DNA of 64,000 nt from Parasitella parasitica NRRL 2501 (Eukaryota; Fungi; Mucoromycota): contig MU619241.1 in the NCBI GenBank assembly GCA_025201805.1, positions 357,600 to 421,599 on the forward strand, read 5' to 3'. The translations under genes were made by a program, and so were the position numbers. The notes beneath the pieces are model-generated. The model was given only the letters and a program-made list of their open reading frames with translations, searched no databases and was not told the DNA's origin. Positions 5,602 through 62,748 of this stretch are shown here, piece by piece. Each line of letters opens with the position of its first letter. Within the stretch, counting starts at the first letter, position 1.

Positions 5602-8600
5602 CCTCTCTCTTTGCTCCCCCGCCTCCATACCTCTCTTGTTTTTAGTATCGAAGTTGACGTTGGGGGTGGCGTTTGATCGCCTACGGAAGGCTAATTAGAG
5701 CACTCTCTCCTCCTTATTTGTTGTAAAACTTACTGTAAGGCTGATTACTCGACATGGACACTAAAATCTTTAGCGCTTCATGAGGCCTACTGTTCTCCAT
5801 TTCCAGCTTGGCAAACATGTTGTACAGTACAGGGGCGTTTCTCTGCTCATTTTCAGGGAATGTACGATACATGGACAATGCAGTCAGATATACTTTGCGT
5901 GCCTACAATTTTCGGATGCAATGGACTTTGTTAGGAGACATCTCCTGACGACGATACAAAGACGACAAACCTCGTCAAGCCGACTGTGGCTTTTTTCCAT
6001 TTGTGCATACGCATTCCATAGTGTCAGGCTATTCCTCTGATCTTTCAACAACGATTTTGCCAACTGACGACCCCTATTCAATTCAAGCGCTATTAGGCAT
6101 TGCAGAATGGACATCTTGCATGTAGCTTACGATTTCTGACCACAGCTAGACTCGAAAGCGAGATAGCAGATGGTTAGATGCTCTGATTTCTCTCTAGTCA
6201 GTAACTGCTGAAACACAGTTCTACTCAAGCGTTAACAACAGCGCACTTTATCAGCGTTTACAGACTTGCCTCGTAAACTTTTCATCAATGTCGCACCGGA
6301 TATACTCTTTCCCCGCACATTTGAACCAATCTCCTGATTTAGCGAAAAGTTCATTTAATCCTACGGGAAACGAGCCTGGTATATAGTATGGATTCATCTC
6401 GGACGTTGTTTGCTCGGGATTCATAGGGACGCCGGATACGTACCACACCAAATGCTTTGTTCCGTTCTGATCAGCAGGCCAGAAATTGTTCAATGGCATT
6501 TCGTTGTGCGTGAATGCATCTGTAAAGAAGTGAGTATTGGTGCCCACTTGAGGCGGTGTGTAGGGCAGCCCAATAAAGACAAATATAGAGTATATCAAGC
6601 TCTGACGAGCATCGTTTGTTGTTGTGTTGAACAGAAACGGCTTGATGTCATCCGATAGAACGATGCGATATGGATCATCGTCTACGCTGTCATCCTCGGC
6701 CTGGCTCATACGCAAGGGCATGCGATTCTTTCGTTCGCTTTCCACTTCAGACGCAAGCCAATCCTTCAACGAAAAAACTTCATTTTCGTCATCGTCATTC
6801 ACAGCAGACGGCTTGTCAAACACTGCATCGGGTACCTCTTCTCCGTTATCTGTGGCCCTGAAATACTCGTGCCAGCCAAGAGCGCCCTCCTCGCCAAACC
6901 GCAACACTTCACTGTCCCAGAATTCGACAAATGCTTTAGATTTTTCTTCGAGCTGCTGCTGCACACGCCCCGTATTAAAGTTGACAGGCTGATACAGGTT
7001 GAACTCCACCGCAGCTTGGATAATGGCAAATGCCTTTTCCTGGTATCCAGACTGCTTGATAAATAAGCATGCTCTCAGTAGAATGTAAACCATCAGCGAC
7101 TCGATATCCTCGAGCTGCTCGTAATTACCCTCTTGGCTGCAGCTCTTGACTTGTCTTTTCAAAATCGACAAGGCATCCTCAAACACCTGCACACACTGCG
7201 TGTATGAGAAACTGGCAAAATTTGTTTGGCGAAGGTTGATGTATTCAGCCCACAGACGGATAGAATCAGGATGCTGTTTGAGCATAGTGTCCCATTCTCT
7301 CAACAACTTTAGCGTCTCCCAAGTCTCTGCTCCACAGCGCAGATATTCATAGATCAGCTCTTCGTCAGTAGGGTTATGATCCAGCGCCTTTTCAAAAATG
7401 CTTAGTTTAACCTCGTTCAAGCTAGACTTATTGGTTTTGTTGGTTGCAGCAGACGGGTCTAGTCCTGCTGCCGCTTCATCTTGAAAGCGGATAAAATCCA
7501 ACCACAGCTGTACATTTTCAGGGGTTTGGTCCAATTTTCGGTTGAAATCAATAGTTCGTTGACGAATTTGATCGTTGAAACTCTCGCCCTGCTCGTTCTC
7601 GTTCTCGTCGTCTTCGTCTTCTTCTCTGTCTTGGTCCGTTTTGCTGCGCTTCACTTTGTTTCCTTCCAGCGATCTATAATCGACTCCGCTGGCTGCATAC
7701 GTTTCGCTGTCCATTGCGCTTTTACCGAGATTGTCGTCAAATGTGATTATGTTTGAATGCGATGCAAACGGATCTGTGATGTTCCTTTTGGGTTTGATGC
7801 GAGTTCTACCAAAGAAGAATGAGACCCTGCTCGTGTGAAAAAGGGCGTCAATAAAAAGCCTACCTTTTCAAGTTTTTGTCCAATTCCTTCCAAGCATAAT
7901 TTGAATCGGTGTATCTCGAGGGCTTCTTTTCGGATTTATCGATAATAGTTACTTGGCCTGTTTTGATGACAGAGCTATCAATGCGCTTATTGAATGGCAG
8001 TCCAATTATCCTGCCTCCTCCTCGTCGCTTATACTCTGGTATTGTGTATACATGGCTTCCTCCGTATGTTAAATTATCGGCATCGCCTCTTTTGTCCATG
8101 ACAAACGAAATGCCAGTGTTCAATGTGCCTGTGTGTGTGATTTCGGGCGATCGTTGTCGATGACGAGACGACTTCTGGACACGCAGTGTGAACAAAAAAT
8201 GAGAACCCACATCTAACCCTGGTGATTTACAACATTTACCTCATGACGGCGTGAATGTCTGCTACTGCGATGTGAAGGTGATCGAGATCTGTGTCTTTGG
8301 CTGCTACGGTGTGACGAAGGTGAGCGAGATCCATGGCGATGAGTGCCACTACTGCGGTGTGCTCGATGCTTGTCAGATGGTGGTGATCGATCATGTCGAG
8401 ATTTCTTTTTGTCTGCGGTTACCAGGCTTTAATTGAGATTCCTAGTATTGATATTGAGTCTAGTTTTACCTTGAGTGTTGAGTGCTAAAAAATCAGGAGC
8501 GCTTGAAAAGGAAGGAATAGGTATACCGGCATGGATGTTGGGAGCAGAATCAAACACTGGTGGTGCAAGGATACCTCGTGTCAATGCCTTGCGTAAACAT

Positions 8601-8677
8601 TTGTAAGAGTCTATCTTTTTCTTTTGTTTTTTCAAAACATGATTCTGTTAATTTACCTTGCTTTTGTCCGAATTCAT
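4667..8677 (-). CDS. NRDE2: NRDE2 homologue (nuclear exosome regulator / nuclear RNAi factor, HAT-repeat-like), multi-exon
   Basis: DKRGDADNLTYG...IPEYKRRG, PENVQLWLDFIRFQD, KLSIFEKAL, QSGYQEKAFAIIQAAVEFN, FWDSEVLRFGEEGALGW, DDPYRIVLSDDI, and C-terminal LLMEKEIRLRTP; first exon MNSDKSK inferred from splice signals. Confidence 0.9.
5572..5610. repeat. (CT)n/(GA)n microsatellite within an NRDE2 intron
   Basis: ctctctctct run seen directly. Confidence 0.9.
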
Positions 8678-9143
8678 CTTTTAAAAAATCCAAAAATCCA
8701 AAAATCCAATACTCCAAAAAGAGAAAGAAGTATCAACAACAAGGCAGACTTTTAAATACTCAAGGCTTTGGTGACTCGCTAATGGTTCCATCCACCAGTG
8801 CTCTCACTCGCATGAATCCGATGTATCGCTCTAAAATCAGTGCTGAAATTCCCTTCTTTTGATATTTAGCCATCTGGAGAGAGTAGTGAATGTGTAGGAT
8901 TGAAGATTTCATTACTTTTTTCTCTTTTATTATCGAGTAGCAACGTTTCCGATGCTTTTAATTTGAGCCCACTTTTCTTTATTGAAAAAGATGCTCCTCA
9001 TATGACAAAAGTTAAAGAAGAAGAAAAAAAAAAAGAGCAATCCAGTGAACGGTTGTTTTTGACTTGAATCAACTGCCACTGTGTTCTCATGCCAAGGAAT
9101 TCAGCGCATAACAATAGCGACGTCGCTGAAAATCATAACCGAT

Positions 9144-55272: not shown

Positions 55273-57617
55273 CTAATAATCATCCTTTAATCGCTTAGAT
55301 GCTTCGTGAATGGCCCGAGCAGCTCTTTCTTCAGCATAACGAGCTCGAGCATAATCTTTGGCATCAATCCCATCAGCAATTGCAGGGAAAACTTGAGAGG
55401 AGTAGCCGGTCCAAAGACCAGGCGCATAAACAACATGCTTGAACCAGCTACGGCCTTCGATGCCTTCAGAGTCAATAAAACCACGTTCAAAATAAATAAG
55501 GCGGTTGTTGGCTTTGTCTAAACGTTTTGATAACACGCTTGGGATATCATCGATAGATTTATATTCAGCAAGACGCTTTTCAAGACGCTGCCTCTTGCGT
55601 TCAAATCGACGGGTTGTCTTCTGTAGTTTATCAATTGCTCGTTCCAGCTCTGGAAACGTATGCGGTGCCGCCAAATCAGTCAATGTTTTAGCATATTTAC
55701 CAAGTTCAGAACTATAGTCAGATGGATAAAGAGGTATAATAGCGGAATCGGCAAGACGTAAAGTAAGCAAACCCCAAAGCTTGACGAGTGTTTGGTGATA
55801 CAAAAATTCAGGATCGCCAAATTTTTCCATCCAGTGGAAACTATCATAATTACTATGGTACACGCCATATTCACCGCCAAAACTCAACTCGATGCTAGCA
55901 ATGCCAACATGGTCTAGGAAACCAACAAAATCAGAACCAGACCCTAATTGTTCAATTTTAGGGCTTTCATTATTTGCAACTTTTTGATCTGCTCTCCATG
56001 CGTCGAAAACTGATTTGTCAGAGCGTGGATCATGGACATCCGAAGCTACATTGTAAAGAATTCGATTCAACGAAGGCGAGGCTTTAGCTGCAAAGTGAGG
56101 ACCAGAAACAGCAGTATCAACATTAATATAGACAGCTGCCTCCTTGTCAAGCCAATCCTTGTTATCCTCTACCCATTCCGTAGACCCAACAAGACCATAC
56201 TCCTCAGCATCCCAAGAAGCCAGCACAATAGTGCGCCTAGGACGCCATCCAGTCTTCAGTAGCTCNNNNNNNNNNNNNNNNNNNNNNNNNNNNNNNNNNN
56301 NNNNNNNNNNNNNNNNNNNNNNNNNNNNNNNNNNNNNNNNNNNNNNNNNNNNNNNNNNNNNNNNNNNNNNNNNNNNNNNNNNNNNNNNNNNNNNNNNNNN
56401 NNNNNNNNNNNNNNNNNNNNNNNNNNNNNNNNNNNNNNNNNNNNNNNNNNNNNNNNNNNNACCCAAACCTTGAGTGGCCTTGAGGATCGGCAATGCATCT
56501 TCCCAAGACAGAGGTAACGAGGGGATCTTGGCTAAAGCGGGGGAATCTTCGGGCTTGATACGGGTAGCGTTTTCTGTAGCAGCATATCCGGGAGTTAAAG
56601 GGTCCCCAGTAGCTAGAGATAGGTAGAGAACAGAGCCTCTTTGGGCCGAGCTTTTGGATCTCCAAGGTCCATTTGGATATGACTCGGCTGGATTTGTAGA
56701 GTTGTCCTTGTTTAATGGCCCATCATCGATGGGATCAGAGTAGATCAATGCACCGGCACAGCCAAAAATTTCTGCAACTCTAACCTTGAGGCCGCGGAAA
56801 TTGCCACCATAACGCATTAGAGCAATTGTACCATTTAAATCGATGCCCCGATCTTTCAAGAATTGAAAATCTTCCAGACGCCCGTAGTTTGCATAGACAA
56901 TACGCCCGTGCACAGTGCCGTTTTTGGAATAACCATGAAATGTGGGAACCACGTTAGGATCCTTACTAGTTTCATCTTCGTCTACAGGATCTTCAGTCAG
57001 TTTAGCTTCAAATCTCAGGTCCTCTGGTCCAGAAATAAGAGCCAAACGATGCGATATAGGATAGTTCAAGAGTGGCCAATAAGTGTCAATCTTTGCTTTC
57101 AGTCCAAAGCTTTCAAATTGATCACGAGTCCATTCGGCCTGCTTTTTGTCATTGGGAGTGCCTGCCAAGTGAGCTTCAGAGGTGTATGTTTTCAAATAAT
57201 CGCGAACGCTTTGATTGGAAGGCAGCTCGAGCATTATCTTTTCAGGATCTGTTAGTTTTGGAGGTGGGGCAGCTATGCAAACGTAAACAGCATGAATACA
57301 TCATGGAAGACTCATTAAAACAGCTTCGTTATATACTTGCCTGGTTTCTTCGTATGATGTTTATTCAGCCATAAACCAACAGTGACGCCAAGCAAAATCA
57401 GAGCTAACACGAGAGCTACGACAGTGGTGACAATGCGAAAAGTCGTCCTTCTTGCAGGCTCAACAGTGCCTCGCTCTCGATTTAGTAAAGGAGCGTTCTC
57501 GCTGTTGTCGCCATTCCACTTTTTATCAAACCATTTACGAGCTTGAGCCCAGCTTTGCTTGATGTCAACACCACTACTACCTTGGTCATTCGAGGGTAAT
57601 GAGATAGCCCTTGCCAT
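55273..57617 (-). CDS. M28 glutamate carboxypeptidase II / Vps70-like type II membrane protein, copy 1 (assembly gap inside)
   Basis: N-terminal TM helix; HLAGT, YANYGRLEDF, RYGGNFRGLKV, QRGSV, GDPLTPG, GWRPRRTIVLASWDAEEYGLVGSTEW, YINVD, GSGSDF, YHSNYDSFHWM, WFKHVVYAPG. Confidence 0.93.
56266..56460. other. Assembly gap (195 N) in M28 copy 1
   Basis: Run of n. Confidence 1.
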
Positions 57618-58037
57618 GACAATTTTGTTTTTGATAAGATAGATAGAAGAATTCAGATATTCATATGCAGCAAACAGAACCCACAGAAGGTATTCGGAGT
57701 TATCGTGCTTCAGAGATGTAAAAGACATTTGGATGACGAACATATTTGGCAATATGTGCCTAATATCAAATCGATTCTGCTAAAGAAAAGTAGCTATTTC
57801 TCCTTTTTGGTTTGTCCTCAAGTTCTGTAAACACTTTTTACAGAAGAAACCAAAATTACATCATATCAAAAATGCACAATACTGTATCCGTGTAATCTTT
57901 TTGATTTTGGTCTTTAAGTAACCCGGATTAATTGCTACTTGTCAAAAGGTCCGTGATTTTTCCGTTCTCAAGTGCTATATAAAAGCAATTGACAAATAAA
58001 ATACCGATTTTTTCAAACAGAACTAAAATAAATAGCA

Positions 58038-58757
58038 ATGTCCTTACCATCTGAATTATCCCTAGAGTACTCTTGGCCTACAGGTGAACGTGTTGAAAGC
58101 AACCAAGTTGATTCTTGGGAACTTAAAGCGTCTCGAAGAGCAATCCGAAACTTAAAGACTCTATTAGCTGGGCAGCCCATGTTAGACCTTATCCAAGACC
58201 AAATAGAAGAAGCCGATGCCTATTACAAGGATATCATTGAAAAGTCCAACGGTCAATATAAAGAATCCCGAATTGATCTTAAAGCAAAAGGAATCTCTTT
58301 GGCTCAATTTATGAAATGGTGGAAGGTTTGGATGATGGAAATGGTTAATCCGGAGATCAAGCAACAGGTCTTTCTCGATACGATGGTACCAGCACACCCC
58401 GAACATTATGCCCTTCCTCCAAATAAAGGTGGCATTGTTGAAACAATTGGAGAACATATTGCTCGTGTGCACATTCAGCCCTGTGCAAACCCTCCTGACT
58501 TTGTCAAAGCATATGGCGATCCTACGTACCAACATTTACCTGCCATTGGGACTCTTGAAGACGGGAGTATTTTGCTCTATATCTTGCAAGAAATTCGAGA
58601 CTCAAACGAAGGCTGTGATTTCCGCTTGCGACTCTTGTTTCCTGCTTCAGCCCCTCAAGTTTTCTTTGATGAACATGCTGAACATCTTGCTGTTGAATTC
58701 AGAAGCTTTATTAACACCGCATACAAATGGAATAAGAAGCAACCAGACACTAAATAA
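58038..58757 (+). CDS. Intronless 239-aa protein, putative PhlG/DAPG-hydrolase-like (Bet v1/START-fold) metalloenzyme
   Basis: Clean ATG ORF with TATATAAAA at 57976. Motif order GISLAQFMKWW...AHPEHY...IVETIG...IRDSNEGCDFRLRLLF...HLAVEF parallels the PhlG family as I recall it. Gene reality is high confidence; the family call is moderate. Confidence 0.6.
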   Translation: MSLPSELSLEYSWPTGERVESNQVDSWELKASRRAIRNLKTLLAGQPMLDLIQDQIEEADAYYKDIIEKSNGQYKESRIDLKAKGISLAQFMKWWKVWMMEMVNPEIKQQVFLDTMVPAHPEHYALPPNKGGIVETIGEHIARVHIQPCANPPDFVKAYGDPTYQHLPAIGTLEDGSILLYILQEIRDSNEGCDFRLRLLFPASAPQVFFDEHAEHLAVEFRSFINTAYKWNKKQPDTK

Positions 58758-59015
58758 TTAGTTTTTTTTTTTAAGATTATCAGTGTCAATCAAAGTATTT
58801 GTGGCAATTGAGTCAATTAAAGTAATGATTTACTTCGAAAAAGTTATAAAACCGTACAAAACATTAATGGAAGCTTCCTTGTTCCAAGTTGGTGAACGGA
58901 TCGGATAAAACGGATATATAGTATCCCGTTTCCGCCTTAAGTTTCATTTATACGAAAATGTATAAAAAAAGCATGGTTCACTTGAACTGCTCTTCATTTC
59001 ATTACAATTAAACAA

Positions 59016-60224
59016 ATGAATATCTTTAAATCATTTACAATAAATGGTGCTATCCGTCAAGCTTCCCGAAGCTCTGTTTTTCGAATATATCAGGTTTGAT
59101 TAAAATATAGAATAACAATCTAGTTTTATTTGCTCACATGCGCGACTTTGAAAAATGCAGGGAAAAGGATTGCGCACCGCACGTCAATATTCAACCCGAG
59201 ATGGAGTAAAGAAGAGCGGTTTAAGTAACGGTGTCTTATTAGGATTGCTAGGTACTGGGATTTTAGGTAGTATTGCTTATAACAGTCAAAGCGGCAAGAC
59301 CCACCCTTCTCAAGGACTAAATCCAGGGTCTGTCTTCAATTCGAAGGGCTTTGTGTCTCTTGAGGTAAGGATACATTAAAAGATATATACATATACTGTA
59401 TACATACTAATGCCATGCTATGATATGTACCCAGTTACGCGAAGTTCAACCTGTCAATCATAACACTAGTCTCTTCCGCTTTGCTCTCCCTGAAGGTCAC
59501 ATCTCTGGTCTCCCTACTGCATCCTGCGTTATTGCAAAGCACACATCAGGCAAGTTCTTCCCTATTATCCGTCCTTACACACCTGTTTCCAATGAAAAAG
59601 TAAGTTTGCATTTTCGGGGATCATCTCTACGCAACAGATTAACTTTATACAAAGGCTGTTGGTCATATTGACTTTATCATAAAAAAATACGAAGACGGAT
59701 CAATGACATCTATCATCCACAATATGAAGCCTGGTGATACTCTCGATTTTAAGGGTCCTATGCTCAAGTACGACTGGGAAAAGAATCAAAAGCAAAATGT
59801 GGGCATGATCGCTGGTGGTACTGGTATTACACCTATGCTGCAGTTAATTAGAAGAATATTCGATGAAGAATCCCCATATAAGAGTACCAAGGTGTCCTTG
59901 ATTTATGCAAATCAAACAGAACAAGACATTCTGTTGAAAAGTGAGCTAGATGAAATAGCCCAAAAGCATCCCGATCGCTTCAAAGTAGTGTATGCTTTAG
60001 ATAAAGCTCCGGAAAATTGGACAGGAATCACTGGATTTGTTGATAAGCAAGCACTCCAGGCACATTTGCCAGGCCCTCAAGATGAAGACTCCGTTATTTT
60101 TGTCTGCGGTCCCACTCCAATGGTCAAATCAATTGCAGGAGAAACTTTTCTAATGAGCCAAGGCAAATTTAGTGGCATCCTTAAAGAATTGGGATATTCT
60201 AACAAAAATGTATTTAAATTTTAA
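59016..60224 (+). CDS. NADH-cytochrome b5 reductase (Mcr1-like, probably mitochondrial), 3 introns
   Basis: NHNTSLFRFALP, IRPYTPVS, IKKYEDGSMT, KGP, MIAGGTGITPMLQ, LIYANQTEQDILL, VCGP, GILKELGY...VFKF; presequence plus TM helix. Confidence 0.94.
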
Positions 60225-60345
60225 AAGATAAATATAGTTAATGGTGTGTAATAATAATAATAACCAATGAAATAAAAAGCGTATATTGTAATATATGCAT
60301 CTGATTTATTCGTGAATTTTGCACAGTTTGAAAGCATGAAATGGT

Positions 60346-62748
60346 TTACCAATTCATTGTTTTTAGATTATTAGAGGTTTTTCCAATGGCCCAAATAGCT
60401 CTTTCCTCGGCATGATGAGCTTGTACATAATCCTTGGCTTCAATGCCATCAGCAATGGCAGGAAATACTTGAGATGCGTAGCCAGTCCAGAGTCCAGGAG
60501 CGAAAATGACATGCTTAAACCAGTCGCGACCTTTAATACCATCAGGATCGATGAAGCCACGTTCAAAGAAAGCGAGGCGATCGTTTACAGTAGCTAGTCG
60601 CTTAACCAAACCAGATGGTATGCTATCCAAAGACTTGTATTCAGCCAGACTATCTTCGAGATGCTGTCTTTGTCTTTCAAAATGACGTGTAATTTTTTGG
60701 AGTTTGCCAATAGCAATTTCCAGGTCAGGGAAAGTATGAGGAGCAGCCATGTCTGCAATTTCCGCAGCATATTTGACAATTTCAGCACTATAGTCAGTAA
60801 GGTAGATGGGCAAAACAGCAGAATCAGAAAGACGCAAAGTAAGTAAACCCCAAAGCTTCACAAGAGTTTGATGATAAAAGAAGCCTGGGTCACCAAACTT
60901 CTCCATCCAATGGAAACTATCATAATTGCTATGGTATACACCGTAATCGCCAACAAAAGCAAAGTTTATACTAGCAATACCAACATGATCCAAGAATGGA
61001 GCAAAGTCAGACCCTGATCCCAATCTTAAAACTTCCGGGCTTTCGTTATTTGTGAGCTTTTGGTCTAATTTCCATGCATCTAAAACTGATTTACCAGTGC
61101 GAGGATCGCTAATCTCTGATACAACGCTATAAAGAAGCCTATTCAAAGAAGGTGACGCTTGAGCTGCAAAGTGAGAACCAGAAACAGCAGTATCAACATT
61201 AATATAGACAGCTGCCTCCTTGTCAAGCCAATCCTTGTTATCCTCCACCCATTCCGTAGACCCAACAAGACCATACTCCTCAGCATCCCAAGAAGCCAGC
61301 ACAATAGTGCGCCTAGGACGCCATCCAGTCTTCAGTAGCTCNNNNNNNNNNNNNNNNNNNNNNNNNNNNNNNNNNNNNNNNNNNNNNNNNNNNNNNNNNN
61401 NNNNNNNNNNNNNNNNNNNNNNNNNNNNNNNNNNNNNNNNNNNNNNNNNNNNNNNNNNNNNNNNNNNNNNNNNNNNNNNNNNNNNNNNNNNNNNNNNNNN
61501 NNNNNNNNNNNNNNNNNNNNNNNNNNNNNNNNNNNNNNNNNNNNNNNNNNNNNNNNNNNNNNNNNNNNNNNCCGCCAGCCCAGTCTTTTTCGCCGCGAAC
61601 ACCCAAACCTTGAGTGGCCTTGAGGATCGGCAATGCATCTTCCCAAGACAGAGGTAACGAGGGGATTTTTGGAACACCGGGAGAATCTTCGTACTTGATG
61701 CGAGTAGCATTTTCTGTAGCAGGGTAACCAGGGGTCAAAGGATCACCAGCAATAATAGAGAAGAATTGGACAGATCCTCTTTGAGCAGAGCTTTTGGATC
61801 TCCAAGGTCCATCAGGGTAAGATTTAGAAGGATTCGAAGAATTATCCTTGTTCAATGGCCCATCGTCGATGGGATCAGAGTAAATCAATGCACCGGCACA
61901 GCCAAAAGTTTCAGCGGCTTTGACTTTAAGACCACGGAAATTGCCACCATAGCGCATTAGAGCAATTGTGCCATTTAAATCGATGCCTTGATCCTTCAAG
62001 AATTGAAAATCTTCCAGACGCCCGTAGTTTGCATAGACAATACGCCCGTGCACAGTGCCATTTTTGGAATAACCATGGAATAAAGGAACAACGTTAGGGT
62101 CTTTGCTAGTTTCATCTTCATCGACTGGATCTTCAGTCAGTTTGGCTTCAAATCTTAGATTTTTCGGTCCAGAAATAAGAGCCAAACGATGTGAAATGGG
62201 GTAGTTTAGCAAGGGCCAGTATGTATCTATCTTTGTTTCTAAGCCAAAGCTTTCAAATTGGTCTCGAGTCCATTCAGCTTGTTTTTTGTCAATGAGAGTG
62301 CCTGCTAAATGTGCCTTTGATGTGTATATCTTCAAATAATCACGGACGTTTTTGCTGGAAGGCATATCAAGCATAATCTTCTCGGCCTTTGTTAGTCCTG
62401 GAGGAGATTTGGGTGCTTGAATTGTAGAGAGAATGTAGCATGAATAATATGCACATTAGCATAAATAAGAGTCAACTTACTTGGCTCTTCTGCATGTTGC
62501 TTATTGTACCACAAACCAGCAGCAGCTCCCAATATAATGAAGGCAATGACAAGGGCTACAGCAGTACATGCTATCCGGAATGTTGTCTTTTTCGGTGGTT
62601 TGGCAGTGCGAAGGTCACGATTTATTAAGGGTGTATTCTCATCAGTCTCACCATTCAATCTTCTATCAAACCACAAACGGACTTGATTCAAATTTTGTTT
62701 TATTCTGCCGCTGCTTTCATCTGATGATAATGCAACAGACCCTACCAT
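60346..62748 (-). CDS. M28 glutamate carboxypeptidase II / Vps70-like protein, copy 2 (assembly gap inside)
   Basis: Same motifs and same single intron position after the TM exon as copy 1. Confidence 0.93.
61342..61571. other. Assembly gap (230 N) in M28 copy 2, at the homologous position
   Basis: Run of n. Confidence 1.

Follow-up and report, generated by a model that had tools for sequence, protein, structure and literature searches.

A single-exon gene of the mucoralean fungus Parasitella parasitica from an unannotated protein family with a predicted PhlG-like fold and metal site

A 64,000-nucleotide stretch of the Parasitella parasitica NRRL 2501 genome (assembly GCA_025201805.1, contig MU619241.1, positions 357,600 to 421,599; the window, to whose numbering all positions refer unless a locus is named) carries a single-exon gene for a 239-aa protein of an unannotated family. 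The coding sequence, including its TAA stop codon, occupies 58038..58757 on the + strand. We propose that the protein is a metal-dependent hydrolase built like PhlG and phloretin hydrolase (Phy), a reading to which we assign a probability of about 0.6. PhlG and Phy are carbon-carbon (C-C) hydrolases of the Pfam family PF18089 (DAPG_hydrolase). The proposal builds on the predicted fold, on a remote but non-random profile match and on four almost invariant residues that are predicted to bind a metal.

The gene itself is real and is transcribed as one exon. Its open reading frame (ORF), with an ATG start, a TAA stop and 239 codons, matches exactly between the ORF listing of the window and an original prediction made from the DNA letters alone. 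The five motifs named in that prediction occur in the proposed order: GISLAQFMKWW (residues 85-95), AHPEHY (119-124), IVETIG (133-138), QEIRDSNEGCDFRLRLLF (184-201) and HAEHLAVEF (213-221). The proposed TATA box is also present (TATATAAAAG at 57976-57985, 62 nt 5' of the ATG) and lies within a promoter/5' leader region (57942..58037, +) that is conserved with the Benjaminiella poitrasii orthologue. In blastn, positions 7908-8731 of the Benjaminiella locus (L037) correspond to 57942-58768 of the window with 88% identity, and the flanks outside this block are unrelated. A public sequencing run that behaves as RNA yielded a 644-nt contig colinear with 58043-58686 with 0 differences. Contigs of the same run skip the introns on both sides, specifically, 57273-57340 in the upstream M28-type peptidase gene (- strand) and the GT..AG introns 59091-59157, 59363-59432 and 59600-59654 in the downstream flavoreductase-like gene, confirming an intronless gene among spliced neighbours. 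The run is available as contigs and bears on exon structure, not on expression level or transcript ends; its depth is 0 in the bins 57722-57915 and 58692-58885, inside the spacers flanking the gene. One copy is found in the 32.8-Mb genome. A chance ORF can be dismissed because there are 142 homologues at E≤1e-3 in a word-indexed database and 230 representatives of 50%-identity clusters in an exhaustive one, and because dN/dS (ratio of nonsynonymous to synonymous substitution rates) against other Mucoromycota is 0.03-0.16.

All homologues are labelled 'hypothetical' and none carries a Pfam domain. Searches with the single sequence returned nothing relevant from Pfam (only a sub-threshold DUF match), no match from NCBIfam and nothing relevant among Protein Data Bank (PDB) sequences; DUF5638 (E 0.02) and a Legionella protein (E 0.1) were dismissed as noise. 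A fungal-only profile (A1) gave just chance PUF-domain matches against the PDB, and a word-indexed search with the profile of a divergent family alignment of 63 sequences (A2), made to find a bridge to PF18089-labelled proteins, returned close relatives only. The Mucor velutinosus orthologue (P0003) is plainly mis-annotated in its public record, under the name 'Alpha subunit of the F1 sector of mitochondrial F1F0 ATP synthase'. The family also includes bacterial tandem two-domain fusions of 433-508 aa (P0121-P0125 and P0166, with P0122 from Streptomyces parvulus), most of which keep HPEH and HxxHxxxE in both halves, suggesting that the domain works as a pair. PhlG is a homodimer.

A confident AlphaFold2 model computed from 31 homologues (predicted local distance difference test score, pLDDT, 85; predicted template modelling score, pTM, 0.82) consists of an N-terminal helical region followed by a helix-grip domain, in which an antiparallel sheet wraps around a long last helix (residues 207-234) as in Bet v1-like/SRPBCC proteins. 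The N-terminal region spans residues about 20-70 (58095..58247, +; helices 21-39, 45-51 and 53-70 in the model) and precedes the Bet v1-like domain as it does in PhlG (3hwp) and Phy (5xe5), on whose N-terminal parts it superposes; generic Bet v1 proteins have no counterpart. PhlG and Phy occupy ranks 1 and 2 in Foldseek, in VIA re-ranking and in a Foldseek-independent search. Their structural alignments cover model residues 19-237, compared with about 70-236 for most other top matches, and no other solved protein matches over the full length including the N-terminal region. The Bet v1-like fold put forward in the original prediction is supported, with PhlG and phloretin hydrolase as the closest solved relatives.

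A relation to PF18089 is also suggested at the profile level. Seven genuine PF18089 genes from actinobacterial genomes (A4) served as the reference alignment and, when checked against the crystal sequences, matched Phy at E 5e-88 and PhlG at E 3e-63. Profile-profile comparison of the 63-sequence family alignment with this reference gave P 2.5e-5 and a probability of 75% over 127 columns, and hhalign runs of 86 family sequences against 7 or 124 PF18089 sequences gave P 3.2e-5 and 7e-5. Reversed or column-shuffled PF18089 profiles, used as a null control, score ≤20, compared with 38-40 for the real ones. The match is remote but non-random and suggestive of common ancestry. It reproduces the proposed register, placing E135-T-I-G on E-[YF]-[IL]-G and the [HQ]-x-x-R-D-x-x-x-G block on V-H-x-x-R-x-x-x-x-G-x-E. 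In global and low-MAC (maximum accuracy; permissive) hhalign, H216-x-x-x-E220 coincides with the PF18089 motif H-C-x-x-E; the statistics of the -glob mode are meaningless and its HxxxE register alone was used. Weak corroboration comes from a search of PDB sequences with a hidden Markov model (HMM) of the family, in which 3 of 7 sub-threshold matches were Phy (two sequences) and PhlG, from an atlas feature search that listed PF18089 clusters at 0.93, and from a single member of the 63 that matches PF18089 (E 8.6e-4).

Conservation counted over the 86 family sequences, which reach down to about 22% identity, singles out His123 (100%), Glu135 (100%), His216 (99%) and Glu220 (99%) as the four most conserved alignment columns. 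We consider these four residues the predicted metal ligands. His123 (codon 58404..58406, +), part of A-H-P-E-H-Y, is the predicted first ligand and would correspond to the second, invariant His of the PF18089 motif LW[HY]PxxH. Glu135 (58440..58442, +) of E-T-I-G would be equivalent to the Glu of E-[YF]-[IL]-G, with which it is aligned by both hhalign and hmmsearch. His216-Leu-Ala-Val-Glu220 (58683..58697, +), an HxxxE motif in the C-terminal helix, is predicted to supply the third and fourth ligands. Among the invariant polar residues of PF18089 are the second His of LW[HY]PxxH, the ExxG Glu, and the His and Glu of the C-terminal HxxxE; their spacings in one Phy-like gene are 31, 110 and 4. 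All four ligand positions have a counterpart in the Parasitella protein. The PhlG ligands described by He et al. in 2010 are reportedly His129, Glu160, His270 and Glu274, which match the invariant PF18089 columns and their spacing. In the model, His123 and Glu135 lie on adjacent strands and His216 and Glu220 are one turn apart on the C-terminal helix, consistent with a single site. The near-absolute conservation supports the retention of the His/Glu/HxxxE set that had been claimed from the motifs.

A number of observations weigh against a PhlG-like hydrolase. No curated model recognises the protein: the PF18089 HMM (curated threshold 22.7 bits) gave no match to it at E≤10 and did not detect its gene in a six-frame search of the genome. 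The hhalign probability of 63-75% is under the usual acceptance level of >90%, the E-values of 0.34-1.1 obtained with the family HMM against PDB sequences are not significant alone, and Foldseek TM-scores are 0.30-0.44 at a root mean square deviation of 4-10 Å. The Parasitella protein falls short of PhlG and Phy by about 50 residues. At the putative site, the ligand spacings are 12 and 81 compared with 31 and 105-110 in PF18089, the first-His motif reads H-P-E-H instead of [HY]-P-x-x-H, and the equivalence of His123 was assigned by motif, with the hhalign register off by a few residues. Residue 184 (codon 58587..58589, +), which the alignments place on the PF18089-invariant His of V-H-x-x-R, is Gln in the Parasitella protein but His in 65 of the 86 family members and in 7 of 7 aligned PF18089 genes. 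The PF18089 HMM also misses the actinobacterial family members in 5 genomes, yet picks up a genuine PF18089 gene in the Nocardia genome among these five. Since the HMM misses both the protein and its bacterial relatives, and given the other differences from PhlG and Phy, sequence comparison places the family as a distinct sister family of PF18089, not as a member. Of the earlier designation as a distant PhlG-family member, the remote relation to PhlG and Phy is supported while membership in Pfam DAPG_hydrolase is not.

Genome neighborhoods of bacterial members are of a catabolic type. A scan of prokaryotes with a tighter profile (A3; one genome per species) identified 27 loci, every one in Actinomycetota, at 34-45% identity. 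A TetR regulator is located directly upstream in 16 of 24 actinobacterial loci, mostly in divergent orientation, and a short-chain dehydrogenase downstream in 7 of 24. TetR-plus-enzyme arrangements are typical of ligand-induced catabolic or detoxifying enzymes. The actinobacterial arrangement resembles phlH (TetR)-phlG (PMC8003664). The actinobacterial regulator has TetR_N and TetR_C_11 domains and sits about 100 bp upstream; its ligand could reveal the substrate. One deep-branching bacterial member is found in a dense operon between an ATP-binding cassette (ABC) substrate-binding protein and an Amidohydro_2 protein. The operon further encodes three CoA-transferases, a MaoC-type hydratase, an alpha/beta-hydrolase and an acyl-CoA ligase; upstream lie MarR and a CocE/NonD hydrolase. 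An enzyme of small-molecule catabolism would suit these surroundings, which do not name its substrate. An Amidohydro_2 neighbour common to Umbelopsis and the bacterial operon was judged not significant. In Recurvomyces mirabilis, an intronless CocE/NonD (Peptidase_S15 + PepX_C) hydrolase gene (L047:5540-7270, -) adjoins the family member divergently and is 41% identical over 544 aa to a bacterial metagenome copy (L046:4343-6061, -). In the metagenome, CocE/NonD lies close upstream on the opposite strand, with a substrate-binding-protein gene between it and the family member. The two genes may be a co-transferred or functionally linked pair, a combination not seen at the other loci examined.

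Named fungal homologues come from Mucorales (Benjaminiella, 89% identity; several Mucor, Backusella, Helicostylum and Lichtheimia) and also from Umbelopsis and Mortierellomycotina (Linnemannia, Dissophora), at about 81% identity for the latter two. Ascomycota homologues are patchy (50-61%; Exophiala, Fusarium, rock-inhabiting Dothideomycetes, Talaromyces and Eutypa). In a maximum-likelihood (ML) tree (LG+C20+F+G4, 72 rows), the three Mucoromycota lineages form a single clade (99/96) whose internal branches are very short. This clade is nested in one fungal clade (100/99), which stands apart from an actinobacterial clade (98/96) and from two further clades made up of unnamed metagenomic sequences. 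A Dikarya donor, suggested by the nesting of Mucoromycota within Ascomycota in the ML tree, is not robust, with an approximately unbiased (AU) test p = 0.21 for Mucoromycota as sister to the other fungal members. The Mucor circinelloides complex (P0023, P0024, P0035, P0065) forms a long branch (0.30) in the otherwise very slow Mucoromycota clade and M. bainieri has two copies, which may reflect relaxed or shifted constraint. All 11 fungal loci examined, including that of Parasitella, are single-exon. The GC content at third codon positions (GC3) tracks the host, from 37% in Parasitella to 54-60% in Dissophora and Linnemannia, so that neither contamination nor a recent fungus-to-fungus transfer explains the high identity to Mortierellomycotina and Umbelopsis. 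Synonymous divergence is saturated in deep pairs while nonsynonymous divergence remains low. These comparisons describe an ancient, vertically maintained and strongly constrained Mucoromycota gene.

The claim that the gene was horizontally acquired in one mucoralean fungus is not borne out: orthologues occur across Mucorales, Umbelopsis and Mortierellomycotina, and such a distribution throughout Mucoromycota had been named beforehand as refuting horizontal gene transfer at this level. The more specific scenario of a recent acquisition from bacteria or Dikarya, detoxifying 2,4-diacetylphloroglucinol (DAPG) or a plant acyl-phenolic in Parasitella, is very improbable, its recent transfer being largely refuted. 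It could draw on the lack of introns next to spliced neighbours, on the existence of an actinobacterial sister clade and on the absence of common synteny with any of 10 other fungal loci. The single Mucoromycota clade, the host-matched GC3 and the saturated synonymous sites speak against it, a high specificity of PhlG for DAPG has been reported (PMC8003664), and nothing connects this divergent family with DAPG. Among the 11 fungal loci, no two have a neighbour gene or flanking DNA in common; similarity stops at the gene, and a carrier or mobile element was rejected. Lost synteny as a sign of relocation is uninformative because the order of the neighbouring genes is itself scrambled between Parasitella and Benjaminiella, whose neighbours map to another contig here. 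An IPK-SET pair is kept between Parasitella (C160:58966-63167) and B. poitrasii (L037:11674-15477), with Myb on the opposite side and with Tom7 and dCMP deaminase elsewhere; the Benjaminiella SET orthologue is 74% identical, compared with 89% for the hydrolase-like protein. That bacteria and fungi exchanged the gene once, in the distant past, is a reasonable though unproven reading; it agrees with the absence of introns from every fungal copy, with the patchy occurrence in Ascomycota and with the sister clade in Actinomycetota. More tentatively, the gene may be the first eukaryotic representative of a separate family of PhlG-like metallo-hydrolases that reached fungi from bacteria in one early event, never gained introns and came to serve an indispensable endogenous pathway in Mucoromycota, such as beta-dicarbonyl or acyl-aromatic cleavage. 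Such recruitment would explain about 80% identity across subphyla that are hundreds of millions of years apart.

As to function, we infer metal identity, chemistry and substrate class by analogy with PhlG and Phy. The protein would be a cytosolic enzyme with a Bet v1-like fold and an N-terminal helical extension, depending on a metal, most likely Zn. His123, Glu135, His216 and Glu220 would bind the metal at the mouth of the hydrophobic Bet v1 pocket, where it could polarise a substrate carbonyl and activate water, leading to cleavage of the adjacent C-C bond. The reaction would amount to a retro-Friedel-Crafts/retro-Claisen hydrolysis of an acyl-phenol or beta-dicarbonyl compound. Conservation is extreme (dN/dS ≤0.16; about 80% identity between subphyla), which favours a constant and possibly endogenous metabolite over a bacterial antibiotic met only now and then. 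DAPG, as originally envisaged, or phloretin as the substrate is not supported, and the strong cross-subphylum conservation together with Gln184 argues against a simple transfer of substrate or mechanism. The same fold and a real metal site might also serve another chemistry, such as that of a decarboxylase, isomerase/cyclase, hydratase or amide/ester hydrolase with a conserved primary or lipid-related metabolite as its substrate, after divergence from the C-C hydrolases. We regard this as a serious alternative, though a clearly less probable one: it would accommodate the failure of the PF18089 model, the much shorter inter-ligand loops, Gln184, a cross-subphylum conservation that is unusual for xenobiotic enzymes, and the rank of Bet v1/SRPBCC cyclases, norcoclaurine synthase and similar proteins just under PhlG and Phy in the fold lists. 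The two C-C hydrolases are nevertheless the sole solved matches over the full length with the N-terminal region, the His/Glu/HxxxE set is kept in full and the bacterial contexts are of a catabolic type. A non-catalytic small-molecule or lipid binder of the Bet v1/START type, whose conserved His and Glu residues would be structural or ligand-contacting, is unlikely, because most-conserved columns made up of His/Glu/HxxxE are typical of a metal centre and not of a hydrophobic pocket, the closest structures are enzymes, and bacterial members are found in regulator-plus-enzyme and operon contexts.

The genes around the Parasitella locus provide no functional clue, nor do the other fungal neighborhoods; the adjacency of flavoreductase and M28 peptidase genes is confined to the window locus and was not seen at any other fungal locus examined. 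Upstream, a 145-aa ORF at 57315-57752 (-) belongs to the M28-type peptidase gene (main ORF 55273-57234, -) as its 5' exon and does not form a gene of its own, as shown by RNA contigs that join 57272 to 57341. Read on the - strand, the 68-nt intron 57273-57340 is of the GC..AG type, and the hydrophobic stretch of this exon is probably the membrane anchor of the peptidase. A run of N at about 56266-56460 (X in the peptidase ORF) breaks the gene and is spanned by an RNA-like contig (joint 56265 to 56461). Downstream, exon 1 of the flavoreductase-like gene (59044-60268, +) ends at 59090, 5' of the mechanically called ATG at 59155. One RNA-like contig reaches 61000 and then jumps to 56054 (window 60299-61000), which is probably a cross-assembly of two flanking M28 peptidase paralogues.

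Bet v1-fold retro-Friedel-Crafts C-C hydrolases are a very small class, represented by PhlG and the phloretin hydrolases, and we know of no description of PhlG-like enzymes in early-diverging fungi. A separate family that escapes the Pfam model but shares the metal-ligand set would widen this class. The family is found in Actinomycetota, in Ascomycota and in each of the three major Mucoromycota lineages sampled, and it comprises at least 230 clusters at 50% identity; the present assignment would provide a name and a testable hypothesis for hundreds of 'hypothetical proteins'. In early-diverging fungi, opportunistic Mucorales among them, the unusually strong conservation suggests that the physiological role is constant; the finding offers neither a clean story of recent horizontal transfer nor a demonstrated antibiotic-resistance function. 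What is known is the fold class and the ligand set, and what is new is an unannotated, architecturally trimmed and phylogenetically broad family that is invisible to the Pfam model.

PhlG of Pseudomonas fluorescens (3hwp, PF18089) is about 13% identical to the Parasitella protein and longer (about 294 aa versus 239 aa), with 31 rather than 12 residues from His to Glu, 110 rather than 81 from Glu to HxxxE, and an invariant His in place of Gln184. Unlike phlG, the Parasitella gene is eukaryotic, monocistronic and not located beside any phl-type genes. Phloretin hydrolase of Mycobacterium abscessus (5xe5/5xey, PF18089) gave a sequence match at E 0.34, not significant alone, and its architecture differs in the same way. 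Generic Bet v1/SRPBCC proteins (PR-10 allergens, norcoclaurine synthase, polyketide aromatase/cyclases, PYR/PYL receptors and START domains) have neither the N-terminal helical region nor the His/Glu/HxxxE set, and score 1-3 Z units below PhlG and Phy with about 45 fewer aligned residues. A comparable case is Rv1775 of M. tuberculosis, a predicted PhlG-like C-C hydrolase with about 28% identity to PhlG/Phy, whose relation to these enzymes was likewise inferred mainly from a structural model and conserved Zn-coordinating residues (PMC8562490). As its reported identity indicates, Rv1775 lies inside or close to PF18089, whereas the family described here is much more distant.
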